NCBI GenBank assembly: GCA_044892505.1
Contig: CM097882.1
Coordinates: 468,224,001-468,288,000 of the forward strand
DNA length: 64,000 bases
Direction: 5' to 3'
Source of the DNA: Schmidtea nova
Taxonomy: Eukaryota
Numbering within the stretch: the first letter of the stretch is position 1; the number at the start of each line of letters is the position of its first letter. A model generated the notes under the pieces. The model did no database searches. It worked only from the letters and a program-made list of their open reading frames with translations, and was not told the DNA's origin. This document shows, piece after piece, positions 38,452 through 62,769 of the stretch. Both the position numbers and the translations under genes were made by a program.

Positions 38452-41271
38452 TAGGGTTAGGAATCCCGGGATCCCGGGATCCCGAAATCCCGGGATCCCG
38501 CAATTTTTAGCAATCCCGAAATCCCGGGATCGAGCACTTGATCCCGGGATTTGACTTTTTAAGCCTAAAAGGAAAAATACCTTACAGTTTCCTTAAAAAT
38601 TCTTTAAAACAATCGTTTTTGGTTGAACATTTTCAAATTTAAATTTTTTCGGTTGAGATTTGAATTTTGTCATATAGAAAATACTTGGAATTTTTTTTGC
38701 ATTCAAATTCTTAAAATATATAAATTTTAAAAATCGAAATTCTTAGAACTTTTTTTTTCAATATTCAATTTGTAATTATATTCTTAAAATTTTTTGTTGG
38801 CGCTCAGACGTAATTAGTATATAATTGTTTTCACGTGTTATTGTTTTTGATTATTTTAAAGTGTAGATTTAATTAAATTATCATTCGCACTATTTGAACA
38901 ACAAATTTTAAAAATATAATGGCGTCTTACATAGACCATGAAAAGAAAAGTAATTCTGCTGTTTGGAAACATTTTTTACGAGAAGAAAAAGGACAGACAG
39001 CGATGTGTAAGTATACCGACTGCAAAAAAATTCTAAAAATTGGGGGTGGGTCAACGAAAGGTCTCCATACGCATCTACTTTCCGTCCATAAAATTAACAT
39101 CACAACAGCTACTACTTCGGCTAACACATCAGATGAACCACCAACAAAAAAATCGAAAAGTTAACCAAGTATTTTCCGATGCTGGAACGAGAAGAAAAAT
39201 CACTTCCTGCTACACTTGCAAGGTTAACCGCACTTGATGGGATTTCATTTAACGTTATATGCCGTTCTTCTGATTTACGTGCAGGTCTTATAGCAACAGG
39301 ATTCAAAAGTTTACCTACAACAGTCAACACAGTGCGCAAAATAGTTGTAGATTACAGCAAAAAAATTAAGAATTCATTAATTACGGAAATAGATGGCAAA
39401 AAAACCCACAATTCGGTGTTGGTGAGAGATTTTCCTTATCGTTTGATGAATGGACATCACTACGTAACCGTCGGTACATGAATATTAATTTACATGCTCA
39501 AAATTGTCAGTTCTGGAGCTTAGGCTTAATTCGAATAACAGGATCAATGCCTGCAGATAAATGTATTGAGCTCCTAGAACAAAAGCTCGCAGAATATGGA
39601 CTTGATTTGCGAAAAGATATCGTCGGAATTATGACTGACGGAGCAAGTGTAATGAAAAAAGTTGGGAGATTATTACCTGTAAATCAACAATTATGTTTTG
39701 CCCATGGTGTGCAACTGGCCGTAATTGAAGTACTATATCAAAAGCAAAATATAGAAACAGATCAGCAATTCGACGAAGACGAACAATCAGAAGTAGAACA
39801 CGATTTTTCGGAGAGTAACGACGATGAAATTTTTTCTGACAACGAAGAATTGGTTGATCTCGATTCTGGTCATAGGCATGGAGGAAACCAAAGTGATGTT
39901 ACTGAGATAAATTCCGCTCCAGTGATCAAAAAGGTACGAAAATTGATAGTAATGTTCAGACGATCGCCAACAAAAAACGATATCTTGCAGAAATATGTTG
40001 CGGCTGAATTTGGGAAGCAAATAACTCTAATAAAAGATTGCAAGACTAGGTGGAACAGCCTTTTGTCAATGCTTGAACGTATCTATTTATTAAAAAATTG
40101 TATTCAAAAGGCATTGATAGACATAAGTCTACCTGAAGGTGAATCATTTGCTTTATCTAATGATGAGCTTAAAATGATATCTTCTATCATTAGTGCTCTA
40201 GTACCAGTAAAAGCAACAGTCGAGGCCCTTTGTCGTCGGGATGCTAGTCTGTTCACAGCCGATGTTGTTATAATTTTTTTGTTAAAAAAACTTAAAGATT
40301 CTAACAACGTTATATGTCAAAAATTGCATTCAGCTCTCATTCTTCGCATGCAACAAAGGCGGACAGATATCAGTGGTGTACTTCAGTATTTACATAATGG
40401 TAGGACAAACGTTCAGTCCGAATCTGAAATAGCGCTCGTAACAGCTCCATCTGCCGTAAAATGTCGCAAAATAATAGTTGAGTTACTCGAAAGATTAGAT
40501 GCTGCAAATTCAGCTATAGCACTAACAGCTCATGAGTCCGAAGTTGAATCTTCTGTTTCAAATGAGGCACCTATCGAAATTGTTTCAGATTCTTCTGATT
40601 CTCCATCTGAATCTCTTTCCTTTTCTCTTGAACAACCTTTAACTATTGCAGACGAGCTCAATAAAGCTATAAAACAAGCACATTTTCCGAGGATGCCAAT
40701 TCGATGTGAGATGCTGTCAGCGAAAATTCAAAAGGAAATGGTATTGTTTGAAAATGGAGGAACACGTGGTGATTTTTTGCAAAGAGCGTATGATTTTCTA
40801 ATGACAATCAAACCAACCAGTGTAGAGTCCGAACGTGCCTTTTCTGCGGCCGGACTTTTTGCAACGAAAATAAGAAGTCGTATGGGCGATGAAACTTTGG
40901 ATGCACTATGCTTTCTTAAAAGTTATTTGATGTATGAATTTGATGTATAATATTATAAAAACATTTATTTTCTTTATAATTTAATAAACTATTTTTTATA
41001 AACTTATTTTTGAATGTGTCATTTTTTTTAAATACCTGTTCTTGAAATATATTAACGGGATTTTTAAATACCTGTTCTTGAAATATATTAACATATTATT
41101 TTAACAAAATTAATCTCTTTCTTTTTCTATTAATTTGGTTAAAATAGTATGTTAATATATTTCAAGAACATGTATTTAAAAATCCCGGGACTAATCCCGG
41201 GATCCCGGGATTAGGAAAATGCAATCCCGAAATCCCGGGATTGAAAATATAGCACGGGATTGCCAACCCTA
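38452..41271 (+). mobile_element. Near-complete hAT transposon, 2820 bp
   Basis: TIR tagggttaggaatccc / gggattgccaacccta; 8-bp TSD atgttcac; many cccgggat subterminal motifs. Confidence 0.97.
38919..40950 (+). pseudogene. hAT transposase in three frames
   Basis: BED finger, FDEWTS, TDGASVM, CFAHG, TRWNS and SVESERAFS; frame changes lie at A-runs near 39150 and 39400. Confidence 0.9.
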
Positions 41272-41914
41272 ATGTTCACTAATAAATATCCAACGCCATT
41301 TGGTTTGTGTTCTGAGCTCGTGTATCAATTTTCATGTAATGGGTGTAATGCCACATACATTGGAGAGACTGCCCGTCATCTCTGCACCCGAGTTCTTGAG
41401 CATTGCCGACAAAAAGGACTGACTAATATTAGTGATCATTTTAGGAAATGTGTCAGTAAAAAATAGGTATCTCTGATTTTAAAATTATTTCAAAAGGTTT
41501 AAGTAATTAGTGGGAACGAGTAACTTGTGAGGCATTGTTGATAGATATTTAAATCCAAAAATAAATGATCAACTTGTCCGTTCCACGGATATTTTGAATG
41601 TGTTTAAGTAACTGAATGTTGAAAGTTTGAATTGTGTTTGTGGTATAATTATGATTGTTTTTGTGAACATTTTCATTTTTTTAAATTTGTAAATCGTATG
41701 TTGAATTTTAAAATTTTATGTAATAAAAATTAAATTAAATATTATTTTTAAAAAAAAATATGTTAAATTATGAAAAATGTTATGTTCGTTTATTAATTGA
41801 TTTTAAAATTTTATGTAATAAAAAATTAAATTTTGATATAGTATGAGAATGATTATTATTTATTAGTTTGTTAAGATATTGCATATTTTCTATTTTATTG
41901 ATTATCCTGATTGC

Positions 41915-43819: not shown

Positions 43820-46800
43820 GGGTCATTCCATGTCAACTCAACCAGCATTCTGACAATTGTTAACCACACCATCTCAGATCTTCCTGAAATTTTCAGGGCT
43901 TGTAGTATATACAAAGTTGAGTCAAAACTTTCCGAGATATGATTTTTTTAAAGTTTTAAAGGTAGTCGCTAGTTCGCACGACATTTACATTTTCGCGATA
44001 TTTGAACGTGAATATTTCAAAAACTAAAAGAGGTATCATACTGAAATTTTCAGTATTTATTCATTTTTTCATGCTGAGTTGAATGGTGTTTTTATCTTAA
44101 ATGTAGCTTGCATACAGAATGCCCTAAAAATGTCTAAACATTGCACTTCAGACAGTTTTCACCAATATTTGACCCGGTATAGCCAAGAACCTATAAGACA
44201 TGGAATGATGTTTGTTATACCATTAGTAAGTACCATATATGTGTTTATTATTTTGATAGAGAATTCATGCTAATCAATATTAGTGTACTCATTGTGGGCC
44301 CCCTTATGCATCACGGTCGTCCATTTTTGCTCGCATTGCGACCCCCAGATGACCATGTTGACAGTAATTCACACTTTTCATATTTTGCACACTTGTTAAC
44401 CTTGGCAAGTACTAGCTATGGTGAAAATTTCATGTTGGTGTCTTAAGCCTTTCCTACTAAATCAATAGCTAATTAAAACCATATTTTATTAAGTCGTTTT
44501 TCGTTAGTTTTTTGCTGTGGCGTTAGTACATTAACGTGTATTATGGTAAATCAGCATAGCAATGAACTGTCAATCAAATTTTATGAAAAAATACAGTTAG
44601 TTTTAAGTTACAAAATCAAATTACAGACTGTTTTTTATCAACCATACAAGCAACCATGTAATGTGATATCAGCGTATGCTCATTATGCTGCCAATGCAAT
44701 TAACTGATGGTATCTTATCTATGTACACACAGTCCTACTTTCAAACAGTTTCTTGCAATTTGCAAAATGCACATCATCATAGCAATAATGTCTTGCTGAG
44801 CTGCCAGACAACATTGGTGGTGGAAGATTGTACAGTACATTAGTGAATGGTATCCAGCAGATATCGTCACGACGTGGCCAAGTTAATCTGTTTGTAGGTG
44901 TTCTGTTTATGAATTTGACCAATATATCTTGATGTTCATCATCACGTTCTGTTATGCACCCAATAAACTAATCAGTGTCATAAACAACAGCCACAAACTG
45001 TCCTGGATGCAGATCTGCTATGCTTGGTGCCGGTTCAACTACCAGGCCAGGTCCTGGTGACACATTGACGGCCGTACCACAGTCATCACATGACAACCTG
45101 AATATCTTGAGTTTGTTTTCACTTACTGCCACAAACCGGTGGTGTGACCGTGTACCAGGAACAGTTTGAATTGAAGCAAATCGTTCAACCAAACAGCTAC
45201 GATGCACCTCAACGTCATCCTTTGCTGCAAATAAGAAATGAATTCCTGGAATGTTTTTGGTTGCCCAATCGTACATCTGATGTGGTGTTAGTATTTGATG
45301 TTGCAGAGTTGCCTGCAAACTTGCTCTTGCCACTAGCCTCTTTACTGTGCCACCAATACCATCACAAGGACTTTTTCCATGACTGGTAGCAAAAAAATTC
45401 CACTCTGCTTCAATGCCAAAATCTGTTTTATGCAGGCACAGATTCTTGAAGTTTTTGTAGTTTTTATATTGTGCTGCTGCTCCATCACTGAAGTAAACAA
45501 TTTTCTGCAAATCAAGCATTTTGCTCTTGAGAAATTTCAGCACTATTTCAATGAAGGCATGGACATCACTTATAATGCAAACGGACAAGCAGCATAGGTC
45601 ATTACTGGGTAGATCACGATAATACACAACAAATGGATGCAATGTGGCCTGTGATGTTTCCCAGTGGAAGCCTTGCACTGCATCTTGACAGATGAATGAA
45701 TAGTTTTCTGCAAAATCCAGCAACACAACTGCTGTTCCAACTGGCAAAGACTTCTTCAGATTACGTAAGTAGGATGACTGTTCCTTGGCCGTGAAATGAT
45801 GATCTGTTGTTTTATCAGCAGCAGTACAAAGTGAAGTAATGAAGTCAGCAACAGTCTCAGTTACAGATTGCAGCTTTGACTGACCAGCATGGGTCCATCG
45901 TTTGTAATTGATCATGTCATCTAAATCCATATCAGCACTATCAAACAGCTGTTCAAGAAATGATTTCAGTGCATCAATACCAGGACAATTAGAGCAACGA
46001 TGCAACATGCATTCTCGATTCTCAGTTGAACAAACAGCCTTCAAAAGCAAGTCCTTATAATCAGTTCTAACAGGCAGTGCTGCAGCTGCAAGTTTCAAAT
46101 TCTGGTGAATCTCAGACACAGACTGCATGGGCACCACTCGAGTCAACAGTAACGCACCATGGTGGTCGCAATGAACAAGACTTGCTAAGCCCAATTTTCA
46201 TTTCAGTTCGCTTTTTGAATTCTACATGCATCTCTTTGAGATTCAGAAGTAGAAGACGTTTTTGCCTATGAACACGTTGACCATCAATTCTGACTGACAA
46301 GAATTCCTTTTGACCTGGACACATGCGGGAAATCTCATCATCTTCAAAAAAACTACGAACACTTTCAATCACATCATCTGGGAGAACTTTGCCATGTTTT
46401 TTCTGTGGGTCTGCCAAAATTCCACATGACTTCTTCAGTTTTCGCGCTCGCTAGACGACGTGCCTGCTTACTCCAAATTCCTGTGAAGCTCTTTGTTGGC
46501 TCCATCTTAATTTTTTCTTGTCTGGAAGCTGTACTGCACTTAATCTTTAATTCAGCCACCAGTTTCATTAGGTCATTGCAACCATCACATTCTGTAGCAT
46601 CACCTTCGTTCACAACTAGGTTAAGAGGTACTTGGATGACTTTGCTTACTTTCTTCTGGATCTCCGTTGTTGCAGTTGCAATTTTACGCTTGGCATATGA
46701 AATTCTACTTCGAACAGGCATTGCATGAAGCTTAACTGGTGTGCAGCCAATGCTTGTCATACTATCATTTAGTTGAGAAAGATGCAAGTCAACGTCTTCT

Positions 46801-48088
46801 ATATCGGCATCACTGGCTGAATGTTCATAACTCTGTTCAGGTACCTGGGATGTATCGTGCTTTCGACAGCTTGGGTTTGATGTGTCTGCCAGTTGTTAGT
46901 GTCAGCTCCTTGGCTTTGTCAATACTGACTGCCCTCAGTGACTTTGTGACCTTGCATGGATGTTTACTGAATGGATCACAACAATACCGCTGCAATTTAT
47001 CAAATTTTTCAAGGAGAACCTGTTCATGGTGGAAGCATATATTGCAGTTCTCTCTTTGTAAATGATCAACAGGCTGGGTTCTTAACATCAACAATTCAAA
47101 GTTAGCATCTGATAGTTCTGACAGGTTATGCAATTTGACACTGCGTGTATGCACTGTCTTGTGGCATTCATCTTGGAGCAACAGTCCAAATGTGCACACT
47201 GGCAGTTCAGCCATATTCAGTGAAAATTGAATCTGTAATACACTTAAAAAACATATTATAACACATTTATAAAAACAAAATATTCACTCAGAAACATATT
47301 AGAATAAATTTGTCAAGTAAAAAATGAAATTCACAATAACAAAACCCAGTTCATCCAAGATGTCAGTTCAAACATTCAAAATTGCTGTGGTCCACGACAG
47401 TGTAGAAATCATGCAATTTCATGCAGATTTTTCACCAAGAAGGAGTCAAGACACCAACATGAAATTTTCACCATAGCTACTACTTACCAAGGTTAACAAG
47501 TGTGCAAAATATGAAAAGTGTGAATTACTGTCAACATGGTCATCTGGGGGTCGCAATGCTAGCAAAAATGGACGACAGTGATGCATAAAGGGGCCCACAA
47601 TGAGTACACTATTATTGATTAACATGAATTCTCTGTCAAAATAATAAACACATATATGATACTTACTAATGGTATAACAAACATTATTCCATGTCTTTTA
47701 GGTTCTTGGCTATTCCGGATCAAATATTGGTGAAAACTGTCAGAAGTGCAATGTTTGGACATTTTTGGGGCATTATGTATGCAAGCTGCATTTAAGATAA
47801 AAACACCATTCAACTCAGCATGAAAAAATGAATAAATACTGAAAATTTCAGCCTGATACCTCTTAGTTTTTGAAATATTCACGTTCAAATATCGCGAAAA
47901 TGTAAATGTCGTGCGAACTAGCGACTACCCTTAAAACTTAAAAAATCATATATCGGAAAGTTTTTGACCAAATGGCCTGAAATTTTCAGGAATTACTCAA
48001 CTTTGTATGTACTTTAAGCCCTGAAAATTTCATGTAGATCTGAGATGGTGTGGTGAACACCACTGGTTGAGTTGACATGGAATGACCT
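43820..48088 (-). mobile_element. Long-TIR DNA transposon, Sola2-like, 4269 bp
   Basis: TIRs of ~625-640 bp (43820-44444 / 47448-48088), GGG left terminus, 4-bp TSD tgaa. Superfamily assigned from TIR/TSD pattern and motifs, not searched. Confidence 0.8.
44719..47214 (-). pseudogene. DDD-type transposase, several frameshifts
   Basis: LLDFAENY, FSDGAAAQYKNYKNF and FFATSHGKSPCDGIGG in ORF 44968-46194; upstream fragments in other frames. Confidence 0.85.
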
Positions 48089-52866: not shown

Positions 52867-53368
52867 GGGATAAGTGCTGCATAGAATTAGAGTCAATAAT
52901 ATTATTAACAGAATAAAAATTTGGTTGTCATTAACATTCGTTACAAAATGTCTACCAATTGTCACTTCATGTATAAAGTTTAGTAAAGTGTATCCACTGT
53001 TTGTTTTCGTCGACATCATGAGAACGATTTATTCATATGGATGGTGTATAAATCTACGATTTATTATGGTCAGATAACCACAATGCTAAATTTGAGTTAC
53101 GTATAGAAAATGGTATAATAATGATCAAGCCGAGTCAGTCAGAGATTCATAACAGAGACGGCCATGGTTCAATAATGAATTTCATCCAAAATTTAAAAAG
53201 CAAATTCCACTATGATATATAAACAAAATATGTAAAATTGAATTTCAGCAACAGTCAAAATAAACAATAACGCCAAAGCAGCAGTCAAGAACTAAATTGA
53301 ATCCCAGATTGCCGCATCGATTTATCGGGAGTATCCAACCAAAGCGCAGAGTAAGCGCGTCTTAGTTC

Positions 53369-53563
53369 TGTAAGTAACTCTTGTAGTTACTATTTTTTAT
53401 GTTTTCGTTTTGTCTTAATGTACATGGAAATGCGTGTAAATACGTAAAGTGGAAATTAGTTACAAATAAAATAAATCAATTCTACAATTATTATTAATTC
53501 TTTTATAATAAATTACAATAATTACAATTATCTACAATAAATTCCTATTGACTATTCTTTTAA
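53369..53563 (+). repeat. 5' LTR
   Basis: Starts tgtaag; about 10 differences by eye from 61623-61813; followed directly by the PBS. Confidence 0.85.
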
Positions 53564-53565
53564 AA

Positions 53566-53580
53566 TGGTGTCAGAAGTGG
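53566..53580 (+). promoter_or_regulatory. Primer binding site (tRNA-Leu-like)
   Basis: tggtgtcagaagtgg, complementary to the 3' end ...CCACTTCTGACACCA of metazoan tRNA-Leu. Confidence 0.85.
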
Positions 53581-53679
53581 AATATAAATTATTAATCCTA
53601 ATCTTATATATTTGTCAAATTATGGCATATACTTACTTTTGTCCTGATATTTTCAATCCATTGCGTCCTCTAATACGAT

Positions 53680-54060
53680 ATGTCACACGAAGGAAAAGAC
53701 GAATACATTCTCAAAATAAGGGAATTTCATCCTAACTGCAAACAGCAACCGAATCCGTTTGTTGTCATAAAAGATGTAAAGAAAATCATGCTCAATCGAA
53801 ACAAACAGTTTCCGTGTTGGATACCGGTCCATTTGCGCGATGAAGTCGTTCATTATTTGTTAAGTGCGTCGTCAAATAAAGATGAGGATTTTTTCGATTT
53901 TTTCGAAAAGATTTTGTTTACTTGTGAATTTACGAAACGTCGAGTTAAATTAGAAAAGATTAATAGGTCAGTGATATTGCGCAGTTTTATGGAAGTGAAA
54001 CCAAAAGCAACTTGCATTGAACATGATCTACAGGAAATTATTGAATCGAGAAATCAATGA
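53680..54060 (+). CDS. Orphan 126-aa ORF inside the LTR element
   Basis: Uninterrupted ATG-to-TGA ORF; no family recognised. Confidence 0.35.
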   Translation: MSHEGKDEYILKIREFHPNCKQQPNPFVVIKDVKKIMLNRNKQFPCWIPVHLRDEVVHYLLSASSNKDEDFFDFFEKILFTCEFTKRRVKLEKINRSVILRSFMEVKPKATCIEHDLQEIIESRNQ

Positions 54061-54092
54061 GTCAATTTATGTTGTTTTTGATCGACGCGTCA

Positions 54093-55005
54093 ACGAGATA
54101 TATATATATATATATATATACGTTGGACAAAGTGAATTTAAAATTGGTTCCGGTTTAATGAATAATGGAGTTGTCGATGAAAAAGCTTCTTACAATAATT
54201 TTTTCAATGTGTCAATGTCTAGTCAATTTGTTCCACGTAGCATCTTTGTAGATCTTGAGCGGACAGTTACTGAACAAATGAGATCTGGATCTTATCGTCA
54301 GTTATATCATCGAAATCAACTGATTAATAGATATGAAGATGCTGCAAACAATTTTGCTAGAGGTTTCCATACCGTCGGTAGGATCATGAAACGCGTATAT
54401 GAAATCGAATTAGAAAAGAATTTAAAATAAATGATTCTATTCAAGGAATTCATATTTATTGATCTCTAAGAAGTGGTACCGGATCGGGAATGACTGCAAC
54501 ATTATTTGAAAACCCACTTGAGTATCCTAAAATATCCAAAGTCAAAATTCCCATCCACCCCTTTCCTCATTTATCATGTTCAATCATTGAACAGTATAAT
54601 TGTATTTTGAGTGAAAATTTTTGCATGGATGAATATTAGCTTGTTGATTGATAATGAATCTCTTTATGATATGATGCTAGAACAAATAGATGTAAAAGAG
54701 CCGGTATTGCATCATATTAATAGATTGATAGCCCAAGTTTGTAGCTCGTTAACAGCCTTTAGTAGATTCGAAAACGAATTATACAATGATTTTTCAGTAT
54801 TACAAAATCTTTCCTTATCCAAGAATACATTTTCCATTAGTTAGTTATACACAATTTTATTCAGAAGCAAAGCTGGTTTGCGATACAAATACGATCTCTG
54901 AATTAACGCATGCAGTGTTTAGTTATTCAAATCAGCTTGTAAAGTGTGGCCTTGCTAGTGAAAAATATATGTCCTGTTCGTTGGTTTATAGAGACGTTAA
55001 AAGAT
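54093..55005 (+). pseudogene. Divergent alpha-tubulin pseudogene, intronless and 3'-truncated
   Basis: VGQ, FVPRSIFVDLE, EDAANNFARG, SGTGSG, LIDNESLYD, NRLIAQVCSSLTA, PYPRIHFPL and KYMSCSLVYR; frameshifts, stop and a (TA)n expansion at the N-terminus. Confidence 0.92.
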
Positions 55006-55551
55006 TAAAGGATTCTCCTAGTCTATCCGAAAAGACTGATAAACTTTTTAATTTCCTCAAATTGGACTACAGTCTAGATGAATTTTATGATTTTTTCGTT
55101 TTCCTGATTTTTACTTTACTATTCACTGTTCCAATAATTATGTTGATTAATAGTGATATGCTCATGATATTGTATGAAGTGACGTTCCTTACTACTTCCC
55201 AAATACGACACACTCTCTGTTTCGGCCCATGCCTGCGCATGAATGGTGGTGTTGTTGGCGCGTGTGTGAGCATGGCTTTGTATATTTTTAGTTTTTTAAT
55301 TGTTATGAATTTTAGGAATTGATTTGTGTTTTTTGAGTATTATGAATTTTTATTATTATGATGATTTAAAGTTAAAAAGTAATATAAATTACTAATTAAC
55401 AAAAGTCTTGTTTAAATATATTAATAATTTGGTTAACAAGGAAAATTAGAGATTTGAATTTATCGTGGATTTTCTCAATTGTATAATAAAATTGAATTGT
55501 TATTGATGATCGATCGAAATATATTTTCCTGGAGATAAATTTTCTGTAATC

Positions 55552-56429
<878 letters not shown>

Positions 56430-56916
56430 TGATTTTTATAACAAACTTATCTTTTCGGTTTGCTTCTAGCCTAATAATTTATTGCTGCAATCAAATGAGA
56501 GTGAAGCTCTTTTGTGAATCATTGCGAAAACACTTAACATACCGAAATAAAATAATGGGGACAAGCAAATATCAACGATTTGTAACAGTTTCCTGTCATT
56601 TGAAGAAGAAAGTACTTGTTGGTATTGAGATTCTATTAGCAAATCTTTGACGAACATCAATCAATGCCATACAATGATGAACCCGAGTTTCAGCCGTATG
56701 GTTAATAGTAAGAGTTCTTACAATGTACTTTGGATAAATGCTGGGTTTATTGGGACCATTCCCAAACGAACACTAAAATATTAATTAAACATTAAGGATA
56801 AACTTTCTATCTTATTCAACTCATTAGACAAAGAATATAATTTTAATACACACGAGTATGCCCTCATTTATAACAATACAAGAAATTTAACAACAGACAC
56901 CCCACAAACTTTATAA

Positions 56917-59900
56917 ATGGGCAACAATTCATTCCTTGACATTTATTACCTTTTTAAAGGTGGCGCCGACAATAGTGATGAAGGAAACAGCGACAACAGT
57001 TACCCGAACACAATACACCAAATCAATAAACCATGTCATTTTTTCCTCAACGATCAAGGACCTCCCAAGGCGTAATTTATAATCTTGGAAACTTATTTCC
57101 AAAGTTACAACATAACCACACAAAAGCAACAATACAATTACTTATTGCAATTACTTATTGCAAATCCTTTCGCCTATTAGTGACGCAATAGTGTTAGCTG
57201 CATCACATTCAACCCAATACATAATCCTTAAAGACTCTGTACTAAATTACTATTCTGAGTCCCAGTCAAACGTTTTTCATCTTTATTTCAAACGTTTGAA
57301 CATAGACGATCAAAAGCCATCCATCTTTCTGAGCAAAGCGATATCTGATCGTGAAACTTTACAGAAAGGAATCACTGCAGGCGAAACAGTTTTAAAGCGT
57401 TTTTTCTTATTGGTCCTTCCAGCTACTACACAGACCGTACTAGCATCACTACCATCTGCAAATGTGAAAGAACTTGCAGAAGTAGCAGATAGAATCGCCG
57501 ACATAACGCAAACCAACAACCCAACCGTCAACACAATTAGTAAAAGAACCGAAATTACTAATGAAAACTTAATAGTAAACGCCATCGAGAAATTATCTCA
57601 GAAATTGGACAATCTACAAATAGATAGGCACAGTAGAAAACATACACGAAACAACTCCAACCGTTCCAGCAGAAACAGCTCGTTCAACAGAAATAAACGA
57701 CTGTCATTTTCACCAAAACTTTAGAAAAGACGCAAGAGTTTGTAATATAGGTTGCGAATGGCAAAATAAACTACCAACATGTAAAACACTTGACGTTTGC
57801 ATTTACTATGCCCGATACAAAAATCAAGCAAGGAAATGTCTCGAAGGTTGCAAGTATTCAACCAATAATTCCAGACAATTCAAAAAAGAGCAATAAAAAA
57901 ACTTGTAGTGCCCTCACTTGAAGCGACAGAAGTCGACGCAAGAGTTTGTAATATAGGTTGCGAATGGCAAAATAAACTACCAACATGTAAAACACTTGAC
58001 GTTTGCATTTACTATGCCCGATACAAAAATCAAGCAAGGAAATGTCTCGAAGGTTGCAAGTATTCAACCAATAATTCCAGACAATTCAAAAAAGAGCAAT
58101 AAAAAAACTTGTAGTGCCCTCACTTGAAGCGACAGAAGTCGATGGCAACCAAATTTCCTCTATTTCTTCTTCTTTCCAACTTCCTGTTTTTTCTTCCTTT
58201 TTCAATAACCTTTCTTTAAATCAAAATCCATTAAATTTCCTTATAGATACTGGTTCAAGCGTATCCTTATTACCCAAAATTTTCAGCTCAGACAAAAACA
58301 CAAAAATCCAACTGAGCGCAGCTAACGGTTCAACAGTATATACCACTGGAACCAAACACATTACATTTCGTATAGACAAAATGCCTGACTTATTTGAATG
58401 GATATTCTATATTGCGAATGTCACTTGTCCAATATTAGGTTCCGATTTCTTAGCTACAAGCAATCTTTTTGTCGATTGCAAGAACCGCAAAACTTTTAAA
58501 TCAAACAGTCAAGCTGGCAAAGCAATAACGGAAAATCAATCACTTTCAAACAGAAATACATACCCATATATACAAACTCTTCCAGAACGTTACAATAACT
58601 CAAATATTAAGACGAATAATTCCGTAAATAACACTGGAGTGTACCGACATTCAATAGTCACAACTCCAAAATTGCCACTTCGCGAAAAGGTACGCCCTCT
58701 ATCCAATGGAAAATTGGAATATGTTCGGAAAGAATTTTCGGAACTGGATGAACATGGAATTGTCAGAAAATCTTAGTCTCCATGGGCGTCACCAATAGAT
58801 TTAGTACTCAAAAGAGACGGAACCTACGGACCATGTGGCGACTACAGGAGACTCAACAATGTAACCGTTCATGATTCTTATCCAATGCTATTAATAAATA
58901 AAGTTTTACGCCGTTTAACAAACGCCAAAATCTTTTCAACCATTGACTTACAGAAAGCATATCACCAAATCCCAATGATTCCCACGTATGTATGCAAAAC
59001 AGCAGTAATTACACCAATACGAATATATGAATATCTCTACATGTCTTTTGGACTAAGGAACGCAGCACAAACCGTCCAGAAACACATCGACAACATACTT
59101 GAAAAATTCAACTTTGTTGTCGCATACGTAGAAGATATCTTAATAGGGTCCAAAAATACCACTGAACACGAAAAGCATCTTAATTTAGTCTTTAACGCAC
59201 TACATTCCAATAACTTAAAAATGAACCATAAAAAATGTTCGTTCTTTCAAGAAGAAGCCCGTTTTTAGGACATGTCATTAGAAGTGATGGGATTAGACCT
59301 TTTCAAGAAAGACTAGATTGCATCAAAAACTTTGAACTACCAAAAACGGTGACACAACTCCGACGTTTTATTGGCACAATAAATTACTGCCACAAATTCA
59401 TACCTAAGATCTCAGAAATCTTAGAACCAATTACAAATTTGTCGAATGGAAAGAAAAATGAACTAGTTAAATGGAGCCACGAAGCTCTACATTCTTTTAA
59501 CAGAGCTAAAGAGTCACTAATAAAAATACAAACACTGGCATACATAAAACCAGATCTTCCGATCACCTTGACGACGGACGCATCGAAGACAGCAATCAGA
59601 GCTATTTTGCACCAAATCAATCAAGGAACTCCCGAACCTTTAGAATTCCATTCACAAAAACTGAACGCGGCACAACAGCAGTACTCAACTTTCGACCGCG
59701 AACTCTTAGCAGTTTGCCTCTCCATTAAACATTTTCACATATTTTGGAAGGACGAAACTTCATTATATTCACAGACCATAAACCTATGGTACATGCCATA
59801 ACTATGAGAGACCCATCTCCTTGACAACAGAGACAAATTTCATATATTGCCGAATACAGCTGCACGATCACATATATAGCTGGCAGAGAAAACTTGTTGC

Positions 59901-61050
59901 AGATTGTCTTTCTAGAAGTTCCTGTGCAATAACTCACCCGCCACTACTTTCAGTCGACGAACTCAAGAGACACAAGCCAACAGAAAAAGACATATCCATT
60001 TTCTCATCTGGACACCTCAATGTCGATGACGTCGACTATGACATTTCAATTCCAGGCTGCATGATACCTATACTCGCAGTCCCATTACGTAAACCAGCTT
60101 TTTCAGTAATTCACGACTTACACCACCCAGGTTCTTCATCAGCATACGAATTCCTGCGAACCAGGATTGTATGGCCTTTCATGAGAAAATATATAAAAGA
60201 TTGGGTATCACAATGTTTATTTTGTCAACAAAACAAAATAAGCAAAAACACTAAACCGCCAATAATGAAGTTTCCAACTGGAAATCGATTTGATGTTGTA
60301 TGCATCGACCTAGTAGGCCCATTACCAATGGATAACGGATATAGTCATATACTGACTATGATTGACAGAAAAACAGGCTGGTTCGAAGAAATCCCATTAA
60401 AAACAATAACAGCCGAAAACGTTGCAACCAAGATCGTTCAGGATTGGATTTCACGTTACGGCGTTCCTAGAAACATCATAACAGATCGCAGAGCACAATT
60501 TGAATCCTTAATCTTCAAGCATCTTACTAAAAGATTAGGAATCAAAATTTTAACCTCTACAGCATAATACCCGCAGGCAAATGGTCTGTTAGAATGATTT
60601 CACAGGACTTTGTAAACCTCTCTGAGAATTCTCTCTATCTCAAAAGGTTGGACCTTACGTTTTAATGGGATGGAGAAACACTCCATCTACAACTACAGGA
60701 TCAACTCCTTCTTAACTTCCATTCGGAACGCAAACTTCATTAGCTTTCGAGATCATAAATTTTGAAACAGTTCAACTTTAGAGGAACTCGAGACAGCAAG
60801 AGCACACTTCCTCACTATCAACCCAGACCCTCAATTAACAACAAGTACCACATACAAACCTTATATCCCAAGAAGCTTTTAAAAAGCAACTCACGTTTGG
60901 ATCAGAACAACATCTGATTCTGGTTTAAAACTGAGATACCTAGACCCACACAAACTCTTAAAGATCATTGATAATCACGCACATGTGATCATCGACGGAC
61001 AAAATCAGACAATAAACTTAAGTCGATTGAAACCAGCATTAGGTTTCATC
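56917..61050 (+). pseudogene. Gypsy gag-pol, disrupted
   Basis: Gag DQKPS and CIYYARYKNQARKC; protease FLIDTGSS; RT SPWASP, CGDYRRLN, YVEDI; RNase H TTDAS; integrase HHCC, IDLVGPL, TDR, NGLLE. Confidence 0.95.
57729..58140 (+). repeat. 206-bp tandem duplication at the gag/pro junction
   Basis: Copies 57729-57934 and 57935-58140; ORF track shows MPSLEATEVD at 57908 and 58114. Confidence 0.95.
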
Positions 61051-61610
61051 GAATTAACAAATTCACAAGACCATGAAGTCAACACGTCATAGAAAGAAAC
61101 CACGATTTCATGGACAATCAAGATTTTAGTACTTGTCCAAATGAAAACCAAAACATTATCCAAAATCAAAATCAAACGAATGATTTTGAGACAAATACAA
61201 CAATACCAAACAATACCGAACAAACATACAAACCAAACACATCAATTGAAACTCAAGACTTAAAGAACAAACAATCAAACAAAAAATCGATTCTAAAAAA
61301 CAACCAATAAGACATACCTTCATCAAATACAAGATCCAAAAAGACATCTTTTGCATATTGGGTACTTGAAAGAACAATAGGACAACCGAAAATTATCGAA
61401 AAATACCGAAAAATACCCCTACACGGTTGATACGCACTATAAAATAACCTAAAAACACATAATAAAAATCTATAATTAACCTTTTTTCTTTTTCTTCTTT
61501 TTCTCTACCTTCTTCAAAATTGTCGCAAATCTGTACACACCTGTAGATAAATATGTAAATAAAAAGTGTGTTCGTTCAGACAATGGTTTCCACATGATCC
61601 GCACTTTTTT

Positions 61611-61620
61611 CGGGGGACTG
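61611..61620 (+). promoter_or_regulatory. Polypurine-tract-like motif before the 3' LTR
   Basis: cgggggactg, 2 nt upstream of tgtaag. Confidence 0.6.
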
Positions 61621-61622
61621 TT

Positions 61623-61813
61623 TGTAAGTAATTCTTGTAGTTACTATTTTTTATATGTTTTCGTTTTGTTTTTATGTACATGGAAATGCGTGTAAATACG
61701 TAAAGTGGAAATTAATTACAAATAAAATAAATCAATTCTACAATTATTATAAATTTTTTTATAATTAATTACAAGAATTACAATAATCTACAATAAATTC
61801 CTATATTCTTACA
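61623..61813 (+). repeat. 3' LTR
   Basis: tgtaag...cttaca termini; aataaa inside; matches the 5' LTR. Confidence 0.88.
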
Positions 61814-62769
61814 TGATCACCGACTTTAAATTTCGGTTTTAATTTTTTTTTTCTCGATAGTCATAAATCGATTTCATTTTTAGATGAAATATCCAGTTAA
61901 ACCTCTATGTGGCGAATGATTATAACTATGTATGATTTTTGGAAAAACATTTATCCAAGTTTTATTACCTTGGTACACGAAAAACCTTTTGAGTCTCACT
62001 CAGTTTTCGAGCAAATCTCTCAACATGAGCTGTCTTGTATTCACAATGTACAGCGTAATGATTTCTTTTAAGGTAATCCGTTATTTTATTTACTTTGCTG
62101 TTGTAAAATTTCTTACCTAAATGAATTGTAAATTTTTTACATGTCCATTTGTAATCTTGATTTCTATAGCTTTGGAAATATCATCAGTATACTTTGATTT
62201 TACTAGAATAGCATGATTGATAAATTTATATTTCCCCAACAACCCAATAACTTAACAGTGCTTTCTTGTACACAATCACTGCAAACTTTTAACATTATAT
62301 AAAACAACATATATGATTCATGTTCAGTTATGATAATAAAAACGTTCAATATTTGCACGAAATTTATTTTAAAGCAATAATAATGTTCATATCCGGCTTT
62401 TGGAATATTTTTTTTCATAATGGTGCATATTTTGAACATCTCCCTAACACAGATGATTGACATTTTTGATGTTTTGAAATTTATACATGTTTCACCGGAC
62501 AAGACTTATTAGTTTATCCTGTATTTAAATACTAACTATATATTTTGCATTATATTACGATTAAGATGTAAAAATATTTTTTTAATCTTTCGCCTGGGGC
62601 CTCAAATATAACTTTTGGCATGGCCTCCGTATCTATAAAGCCTGATCTGACTGCTGCAGCAATTACCATCACTTTTATTTAATGTCAAATTCATATCAAA
62701 ATTAAATTATTTTTATTGACTAACCCTAATCAATTTATTTTTATCTTGCAAAGCTAAACGCTTGATAAC

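Follow-up and report, generated by a model that had tools for sequence, protein, structure and literature searches.

Fragments of at least three host genes in the leader of a dead Ty3/Gypsy retrotransposon

How do pieces of unrelated cellular genes come to lie between the primer-binding site and gag of an LTR retrotransposon? The question is raised by a decayed Gypsy-type unit of 8.4 kb, in which every gene is broken, at positions 53369-61813 of the window (the whole stretch of 64,000 nt of DNA analysed here). With its LTR pair, tRNA-Leu(CAA) primer site and domain order PR-RT-RH-IN, the unit is a dead Ty3/Gypsy LTR retrotransposon, and its leader probably holds 5′ fragments of host mRNAs that were captured by LTR-mediated retroposition, that is, by template switching.

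The frame of the element is set out in Table 1. Its two LTRs align with 179 matches, 10 mismatches and three gap events, giving a total substitution divergence of 5.3%. The primer-binding site begins with TGGTGTCAGAAGTGG (53566-53580), which adjoins the 5′ LTR and occurs once in the window; against a published oligonucleotide complementary to the 3′ end of tRNA-Leu(CAA) (PMC7997516) the site is exact over 15/15 nt and agrees at 17 of 18 overall, the reference being the mouse and not the host tRNA. Around gag-pol there is no second LTR pair, as an earlier sequence-only reading of this DNA had stated, and no LTR fragment; the same reading had placed both LTRs, the tRNA-Leu primer site, tubulin, enolase and pol on the plus strand, which LTR alignment, probe match and Pfam bear out. 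Near gag, neither an LTR remnant nor a primer-site remnant was seen, and the unit contains no N runs. The polypurine tract that had been proposed exists as a purine run before the 3′ LTR, yet it is short and weak. The flanking 5-mers agree at three of five positions (AGTTC versus TGATC), as previously reported, and the boundary of the element is uncertain because the last bases of the 5′ LTR differ from those of the 3′ LTR. Other transposons, hAT and mariner elements among them, are dense in the window. A 29-mer derived from the LTR does not recur in the window and had zero matches in the metagenome and prokaryote-genome contigs searched, collections to which the source genome does not belong; no sibling copy, cargo-free copy or parental gene turned up in any of the collections searched.

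Both coding regions are broken. The ORF in the gag position has no Pfam match, gave no relatives in a word search and carries at least five breaks, which comprise stops and frame changes as well as a perfect tandem duplication of 206 bp; the duplication, whose halves are 100% identical, could be a recent event or an assembly artefact. In pol, Pfam matches follow one another in the order gag-asp_proteas (weak), RVT_1, RT_RNaseH_2, Integrase_H2C2 and rve, and the frame is interrupted by at least eight stops or frame changes.

Table 1. Features of the unit and its flanks (positions in the window)
Feature	Position	Strand	Basis or remarks
Left flanking 5-mer AGTTC, candidate target-site duplication	53364-53368		read from sequence
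5′ LTR	53369-53565	+	197 nt, 20% G+C, starts TG; aligned to 3′ LTR
Primer-binding site	53566-53583	+	complementary to tRNA-Leu(CAA) 3′ end; directly after 5′ LTR
Cargo 1, 5′ part of PurA-domain-family gene	53622-54101	+	relatives, intron position, PurA domain
(AT)11 microsatellite, junction of cargo 1 and cargo 2	54098-54120		read from sequence
Cargo 2, alpha-tubulin-like copy	54110-55013	+	Pfam Tubulin, Tubulin_C; PDB alpha-tubulins
Spacer 1	55014-55551	+	~540 nt, T-rich, G>C; composition
Cargo 3, enolase copy	55552-56210	+	Pfam Enolase_N + Enolase_C
Spacer 2, then presumed native leader	56211-56916	+	~700 nt; composition
gag, approximate bounds	56917-58140	+	ORF in gag position
pol	58141-61100	+	Pfam domain order protease, reverse transcriptase, RNase H, integrase
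Polypurine run GGGGGA	61612-61617	+	6 nt, five bases upstream of 3′ LTR; weak polypurine tract
3′ LTR	61623-61813	+	191 nt, TG...CA; aligned to 5′ LTR
Right flanking 5-mer TGATC	61814-61818		read from sequence

The block between primer site and gag measures 3.3 kb, and the cargo pieces in it (53622-56210) lie inside one LTR pair. The sequence-only reading had correctly located tubulin and enolase copies in a leader of this length, but it counted two captured host copies; the captured host fragments number at least three, derived from a PurA-domain gene, an alpha-tubulin-like gene and an enolase gene. The three are arranged head to tail, all in the sense of the element, 5′-complete or nearly so, and all truncated at the 3′ end. 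A scan of 53584-56916 revealed no A run of six or more and no poly(A). The pieces have no TIRs, no flanking direct repeats and no duplications of their own; that they might have their own TSDs or TIRs was set beforehand as a finding that would speak against capture, and none surround them. Their composition is host-like (G>C, A close to T), whereas gag-pol is A-rich with C>G; near 56.7 kb, where the cumulative skew turns, the host-like composition gives way to that of the element. The two spacers have no Pfam, Rfam or PDB match, and the 3′ part of the first may be the 5′ UTR of the enolase.

The first fragment, whose start lies no more than 38 nt from the primer site, had been taken for an orphan ORF. 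With eight relatives, it represents the 5′ portion of a host gene with a PurA domain, which scores above the Pfam cut-off in seven of the eight family members. The fragment begins at the start codon and ends early in exon 2 (~45% of the coding length), as one broken gene copy with at least two breaks. In the two nearest genomic relatives, L001 and L002, a GT..AG stretch of 40 and 57 nt, respectively, separates ‘..QFL’ from ‘ADV..’; this stretch is absent from cargo 1 and also from P0123, a more distant uninterrupted relative whose contig may be genomic or transcript. The bases that follow the junction in cargo 1 find their best match exactly at the start of exon 2 in both L001 and L002. Because the intron of its two nearest relatives is missing, cargo 1 was probably copied from spliced RNA, the comparison being with relatives rather than with the host parental gene and cargo 1 being the only fragment that bears on splicing; its parent may itself have been intronless, as is the uninterrupted P0123. 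The changes unique to cargo 1 fall on the three codon positions as 27/15/24, versus 12/5/58 for two relatives (Fisher p ~1e-6), and at codon positions 1 and 2 they amount to 10-18%, to be set against the 5.3% divergence of the LTRs. Cargo 1 is under relaxed constraint, with neutral decay exceeding that of the LTRs.

The second fragment is colinear with PDB alpha-tubulins over about residues 5-326 of ~450 (~72% of the coding length), uninterrupted and 3′-truncated, and constitutes one broken gene copy with at least four breaks. Since its homology begins at about residue 5, right after the (AT)11 run, a tubulin 5′ UTR is not visibly present. The earlier description of the tubulin and enolase copies as intronless, 5′-complete and 3′-truncated without poly(A) holds for their uninterrupted form, their truncation and the missing poly(A), with the tubulin nearly complete at its start. 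Identity to solved alpha-tubulins is ~45%, and this low figure, combined with few breaks, points to a divergent tubulin paralogue as the likely source. Capture of abundant housekeeping transcripts, as had been proposed, is not established for a copy only ~45% identical to alpha-tubulins, and the PurA-family gene is a housekeeping gene in no evident sense.

The third fragment extends from Met1 to about residue 235 of an enolase of ~434 residues (~54% of the coding length). It is uninterrupted and 3′-truncated, its Enolase_C match ending at profile position 98 of 296, and forms one broken gene copy with at least one break plus an in-frame gap of ~22 codons. Identity to animal enolases is 69-74%. 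At the 82 columns that are invariant in 11 enolases it differs at six, a number that real enolases reach or narrowly miss. The enolase copy has barely decayed.

Template switching during minus-strand synthesis would account for the sense orientation of the pieces, their 5′-complete and 3′-truncated form, the absence of poly(A) and the intact order of gag and pol. In the particle, reverse transcriptase would pass gag and then the leader on its way to the primer site, leave the element RNA for a cellular mRNA packaged alongside it, which it would enter at an internal point, and copy that mRNA towards its 5′ end; a second switch would then lead either to another mRNA or back to element RNA adjoining the primer site. 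Such capture, proposed in the sequence-only reading, is favoured by the location of the cargo inside the LTR pair, its sense orientation, its host-like composition and its 3′ truncation bias, the pattern described in PMC5131818. The template switch itself is what we infer from this pattern.

The fragments differ in decay. The PurA-like copy has decayed further than the LTRs and the enolase copy hardly at all, which suggests stepwise capture, with at least one cycle of retrotransposition with cargo aboard. The comparison of ages relies on small counts and presumes equal neutral rates in LTRs and cargo, and gene conversion between the LTRs would give a falsely young insertion age. The PurA-like fragment, perhaps together with the tubulin, would be the older acquisition and would have survived one or more additional rounds of retrotransposition, the enolase would have been gained at or near the event that generated the present copy, and this copy would then have decayed in place. 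The serial capture of two transcripts that was initially proposed finds some support in unequal decay (strong in the PurA-like copy, slight in the enolase), although more than two fragments are involved. A wider reading, in which Gypsy elements of one lineage, resident in an AT-rich and animal-like genome, stayed mobile with full gag-pol and had cargo added stepwise to their leader beside the primer site, is possible but doubtful.

LTR-mediated retroposition by template switching has been described in animals (Tan et al. 2016, Genome Res 26:1663; PMC5131818). Retrocopies formed in this way are partial, show stronger 3′ truncation, lack poly(A) and a separate TSD, and include multi-gene chimeras, such as CG4799_CG11924_r, which joins two genes within a Pao element, and the ‘Super’ retrocopy of the mouse, which combines four; secondary retroposition of chimeras has been proposed, and microsimilarity at junctions is the main evidence for LTR-mediated origin (PMC5131818). 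The present locus resembles these retrocopies in its partial mRNA copies within an LTR element, with both LTRs there and several genes joined. It departs from the Drosophila cases, where retrocopies replaced part of the internal ORFs, as gag and pol are here in order and cargo is confined to the leader. Unlike the polymorphic cases of Tan et al., the present copy is old and decayed; two of its cargo junctions show an apparent repeat of the sequence following the primer site, but no more than chance could give.

The maize element Bs1, as summarized in PMC13317346 and PMC5131818 (original studies by Jin and Bennetzen 1994 and Elrouby and Bureau 2001, 2010), carries three host-gene fragments acquired by transduction or template switching, and the common switch points of its copies indicate propagation with cargo. 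The likeness lies in an LTR element that bears fragments of three different host genes. In these accounts, however, Bs1 belongs to a plant, has no pol of its own and expresses a hybrid ORF into which its fragments have been joined, whereas the present unit has full gag-pol, broken fragments and no hybrid ORF. A second likeness, to transducing retroviruses, lies in the retained gag-pol order and in host sequence that would stem from RNA-level recombination. Transducing retroviruses can keep their own genes while carrying cellular sequence; their cargo usually lies near the 3′ end, comes from read-through transcripts and is under selection for its function. In the present unit, in contrast, the cargo is in the 5′ leader, fragmentary and without sign of function. 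Processed pseudogenes made by LINEs are likewise intron-free copies of host mRNAs, but their poly(A) tails, flanking duplications and 5′ truncation were not seen in the present cargo.

Other histories can be envisaged. The unit might be a recombinant of two family copies, one giving the 5′ LTR and primer site and the other gag-pol and the 3′ LTR, around older genomic sequence, or it might be an assembly chimera. Mismatched flanking 5-mers, differing LTR 3′ ends and a cargo 1 seemingly older than the LTR divergence would fit, and the perfect gag duplication is a possible hint of assembly trouble. Such an origin is nevertheless unlikely: at most 38 nt separate the primer site from the start of cargo 1, remnants of LTR or primer site are missing near gag, N runs are absent, and genomic DNA with three same-sense, 3′-truncated gene starts devoid of poly(A) would need the same explanation.

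Arrival of the cargo after integration, into the leader of a resident element, is quite unlikely, whether as LINE processed pseudogenes, as filler DNA at a repaired break or within a gene-carrying DNA transposon. The poor target-site duplication, and hence an unclean history of the element, the density of hAT, mariner and other transposons in the window and the two matchless spacers speak for it. Against this stand the absence of poly(A), A runs of six or more, TIRs and direct repeats at any piece, the single orientation, also that of the element, shared by three abutting fragments, and a neutral decay of cargo 1 that exceeds that of the LTRs, opposite to expectation; fragments complete at the 5′ and truncated at the 3′ end are the reverse of what LINEs produce. 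Two vehicles were rejected individually: the LINE-mediated processed pseudogene, on A runs, flanking repeats and direction of truncation, and the Pack-type or Helitron-like transposon, as no inverted repeats surround the cargo and the intron of cargo 1 is absent.

Finally, acquisition of the fragments as DNA, from host genes that lay clustered or lacked introns and not from separate spliced mRNAs, for instance when read-through transcription of neighbouring DNA is followed by recombination, is very improbable, even though the intron comparison covers cargo 1 and not the host tubulin and enolase genes, the introns of the relatives are tiny (40-57 nt) and the distant P0123 is uninterrupted, since cargo 1 misses exactly the intervening stretch of both nearest relatives, three functionally unrelated genes are each cut at the 3′ end, and read-through would put cargo outside the LTR-bounded transcript and not between primer site and gag.

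Read as LTR-mediated capture, the locus clearly exemplifies a known process, the transfer of an element's reverse transcriptase to cellular mRNAs. As a single decayed copy that shows no sign of function, it has illustrative value. In animals, LTR-mediated retroposition is accepted as a source of gene-fragment duplication and exon shuffling, though its documentation is sparse, and this locus unites at least three host fragments in a leader, a whole coding region retained and fragments unequally decayed. Sibling copies in the source genome, if they exist and share these junctions, would show that such an element can keep moving with its cargo and take up cargo repeatedly; such siblings would bear on how frequently retrotransposons spread host sequence. 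Should the reading of a mobile, cargo-bearing lineage be true, the leader would be a place where cellular RNA is tolerated and has landed more than once, and the element would count as a multi-gene transducing retrotransposon, not as a chimera that arose once and led nowhere.

The LTR-bounded unit proposed in the sequence-only reading is real and built as claimed, with an LTR pair, a primer-binding site (PBS), cargo and gag-pol. Its two LTRs are AT-rich and measure 197 and 191 nt; their alignment comprises 179 matches, 10 mismatches and 3 gap events, with a substitution divergence of 5.3%, and a 29-mer common to both has no further occurrence in the window. Immediately 3′ of the 5′ LTR lies TGGTGTCAGAAGTGG, which occurs once in the window and is identical to the first 15 nt (17/18) of a published oligonucleotide complementary to the 3′ end of mouse tRNA-Leu(CAA) (PMC7997516). 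No tRNA gene is found in the window. The polypurine tract is weak (6 purines, 5 bases upstream of the 3′ LTR), the LTRs differ from each other in their outermost 3′ bases, and the flanking 5-mers, a candidate target-site duplication, are identical at only three of five positions, the same count as obtained before. Pfam matches in pol follow the order protease (weak), RVT_1, RT_RNaseH_2, Integrase_H2C2 and rve, and this order is the Ty3/Gypsy arrangement. The ORF at the gag position has no Pfam family match, and no relatives were found in the search. A paralogous empty site for the flanks is not found within the window, and the LTR 29-mer has no match in JGI metagenome contigs or GTDB genome contigs, collections seemingly without the source genome. 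Neither a sibling nor a cargo-free copy of the element, nor a parental gene of the cargo, was found in the collections searched. All N runs of the window lie outside the unit.

Features of the LTR-bounded unit and of its surroundings, with minimum-cost counts of stops and frame changes
Feature	Position (strand)	Content	Minimum breaks
Unit	53369-61813 (+)	5′ LTR, PBS, cargo, gag-pol, 3′ LTR	
PBS	53566-53583		
PurA-like copy	53622-54101	cargo 1	2
(AT)11 microsatellite	54098-54120		
Tubulin copy	54110-55013	cargo 2	4
Spacer	55014-55551		
Enolase copy	55552-56210	cargo 3	1, plus in-frame gap of ~22 codons
Spacer	56211-56916		
gag	56917-58140		5, including one perfect 206-bp tandem duplication
pol			8
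ORF	18315-19079	254 aa	
Direct repeats	19137-19857	two of 249 nt (95%), 472 nt apart	
Low-G+C region	24000-31000	17-18% G+C, seven N runs (145-496 nt)	
Mariner ORFs	33530-34457 (-)	two, overlapping	
Inverted repeats	35220-35411 / 41272-41463	192 nt, 98% complementary	
hAT ORF	39478-40950 (+)	490 aa	
3.8-kb unit	44028-47864	between 426-nt inverted repeats (94%)	
ORF in 3.8-kb unit	44968-46194 (-)	408 aa	

All genes and gene copies of the unit are broken. In the gag part, a 206-bp unit that includes a Cys/His-rich stretch is present twice in tandem with 100% identity, in contrast to the 5% difference between the LTRs; the repeat would stem either from a very recent duplication or from faulty assembly.

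The unit comes from an organism with ∼30% G+C and lies in a window crowded with repeats, hAT and mariner among them. The intact hAT ORF carries a hAT dimerisation domain, and together with the inverted repeats that enclose it may constitute a young hAT transposon; an exact look-up finds no identical copy of the ORF on record. The 3.8-kb unit looks like a DNA transposon of unrecognised kind, and the ORF inside it has no Pfam match. The two overlapping mariner ORFs match parts of a Mos1-type transposase (HTH_48 and Transposase_1) and on these matches represent a broken mariner copy. The low-G+C region, where arrays of 9-15-nt units and palindromic arrangements are interleaved with the N runs, looks satellite-like. 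The ORF beside the 249-nt direct repeats has no family match.

The cargo between PBS and gag had been described as two host copies preceded by an orphan ORF. Tubulin and enolase stand, but the count is too low, as at least three fragments are present and the first of them is not an orphan. A word search with this ORF yields one relative (P0001, 71% identity), and a profile search against 1.84 billion representatives yields eight. In seven of these eight Pfam scores a PurA domain above its cut-off, and the domain lies for the most part downstream of the captured region. The domain is not found in P0001, in the related protein P0122 or in single exons, searched one by one. This PurA-type family is small (loci L001-L004; proteins P0001 and P0122-P0129); its proteins have ∼350-420 aa, an N-terminal region without family and a C-terminal PurA domain that lies just above the cut-off. 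The profile of the fragment has no match in metagenome contigs.

Genomic contigs carry the nearest two relatives (L001 and L002), and in these a GT..AG stretch of 40 and 57 nt, respectively, sits between ‘..QFL’ and ‘ADV..’. Introns of only 40-57 nt are a feature of the two closest members of the family. At the point in question, the reading runs on without interruption in the window copy and in P0123, a more distant relative. The best ungapped match of the post-junction bases of the window is the exact start of exon 2 in L001 and L002, a match too short for significance alone. Because the intron of these nearest relatives is absent from the window copy, the fragment would most simply be a copy of a spliced mRNA, running from the start codon into early exon 2. 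A second intron inferred in L001 was dropped, the stretch being coding in relatives. At its 3′ end the fragment terminates in an (AT)11 run directly adjoining the tubulin copy. This microsatellite falls exactly at the junction, and its length is about that of the missing first tubulin codons.

The tubulin copy matches Pfam Tubulin and Tubulin_C. Solved alpha-tubulins align to it in four colinear pieces, uninterrupted over approximately residues 5-326 of ∼450, with ∼45% identity as counted on the printed alignments. This copy is too divergent for its few breaks, and it probably stems from a divergent alpha-tubulin paralogue, or else tubulin is the oldest capture; the label ‘housekeeping’ for the captured transcripts is not established. 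The enolase copy spans Met1 to position 98/296 of the Enolase_C profile (∼residue 235) and is animal-like. Its identity to animal enolases is 69-74%; over the same columns these enolases share 71-89% with one another. A word search, with a length limit that left out full-length enolases, returned only enolases of at most ∼65% identity (BLASTP local alignment; 69-74% over aligned columns). Both copies are truncated at the 3′ end, as claimed. Completeness at the 5′ end holds for enolase and only nearly for tubulin.

Considered as a whole, the cargo block contains no A run of six or more, in agreement with the claimed lack of poly(A). TIRs and flanking duplications, which the sequence-only reading had named as evidence against capture, were looked for around every cargo piece and none was found. 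In composition the block has G>C and A ∼ T; gag-pol is A-rich with C>G. The cumulative skew of the unit turns near 56.7 kb, and native element sequence would resume at about this point. ORFs on both strands of the two spacers match no family above cut-off. Captured small RNA or spliced-leader RNA finds no Rfam match, either in the whole window at gathering level or in 53300-57300 with E up to 1. Recurrence of post-PBS sequence at ∼55381 and ∼56405, tried as switch-back points, is discarded as evidence because it is within chance, 41-79 of 300 random window blocks scoring equally.

The fragments may differ in age. In exon 1 of the PurA family, changes specific to each of the two relatives fall mainly at third codon positions (6/5/22 and 6/0/36); those specific to the window copy are distributed evenly over the three positions (27/15/24; Fisher p ∼1e-6), which indicates relaxed constraint. 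At codon positions 1 and 2 the copy has changed at 42/306 sites (95% interval 10-18%). The total difference between the LTRs has a 95% interval of 2.3-9.3%, with about half of it falling to each LTR since integration. The enolase copy deviates at six of 82 columns invariant in 11 enolases, and real enolases of the set deviate at 0-5. On the simplest reading of these small counts, which assumes equal neutral rates and no LTR gene conversion and takes relatives as the reference in place of parental genes, the PurA-like fragment would have been aboard well before the present insertion, and enolase would date from the last retrotransposition cycle or close to it. With the PurA-like fragment aboard before insertion, the element would have moved at least once with cargo.

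Cargo pieces lie in sense orientation inside one LTR pair, adjoining the PBS; each is complete or almost complete at the 5′ end, is truncated at the 3′ end and lacks poly(A). This pattern is expected from template switching in the leader during minus-strand synthesis. Synthesis would leave the element RNA within the leader, enter a co-packaged mRNA at an internal point and proceed towards its 5′ end, followed by another switch. The proposed template-switch capture is partly supported, in the cargo pattern and not in the number of fragments or their housekeeping nature; the process would probably be LTR-mediated retroposition as in Tan et al. 2016 (PMC5131818). Origin from spliced RNA is indicated for one of the at least three fragments, the PurA-like one, and indirectly, as judged via its nearest relatives. 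As described there, LTR-mediated retroposition can give multi-gene chimeras with a 3′ truncation bias and without poly(A) or TSDs, and further retroposition of a chimera has been proposed (PMC5131818). The unit resembles these chimeras in being multi-gene, 3′-truncated and devoid of poly(A). The main difference is that it keeps gag-pol in full order, whereas in the Drosophila cases gag-pol is partly replaced. As summarised in PMC5131818 and PMC13317346, the maize LTR element Bs1 carries three host fragments and in this respect is like the unit. LTR-mediated capture is already known, and the unit of Schmidtea nova adds an example with at least three fragments.
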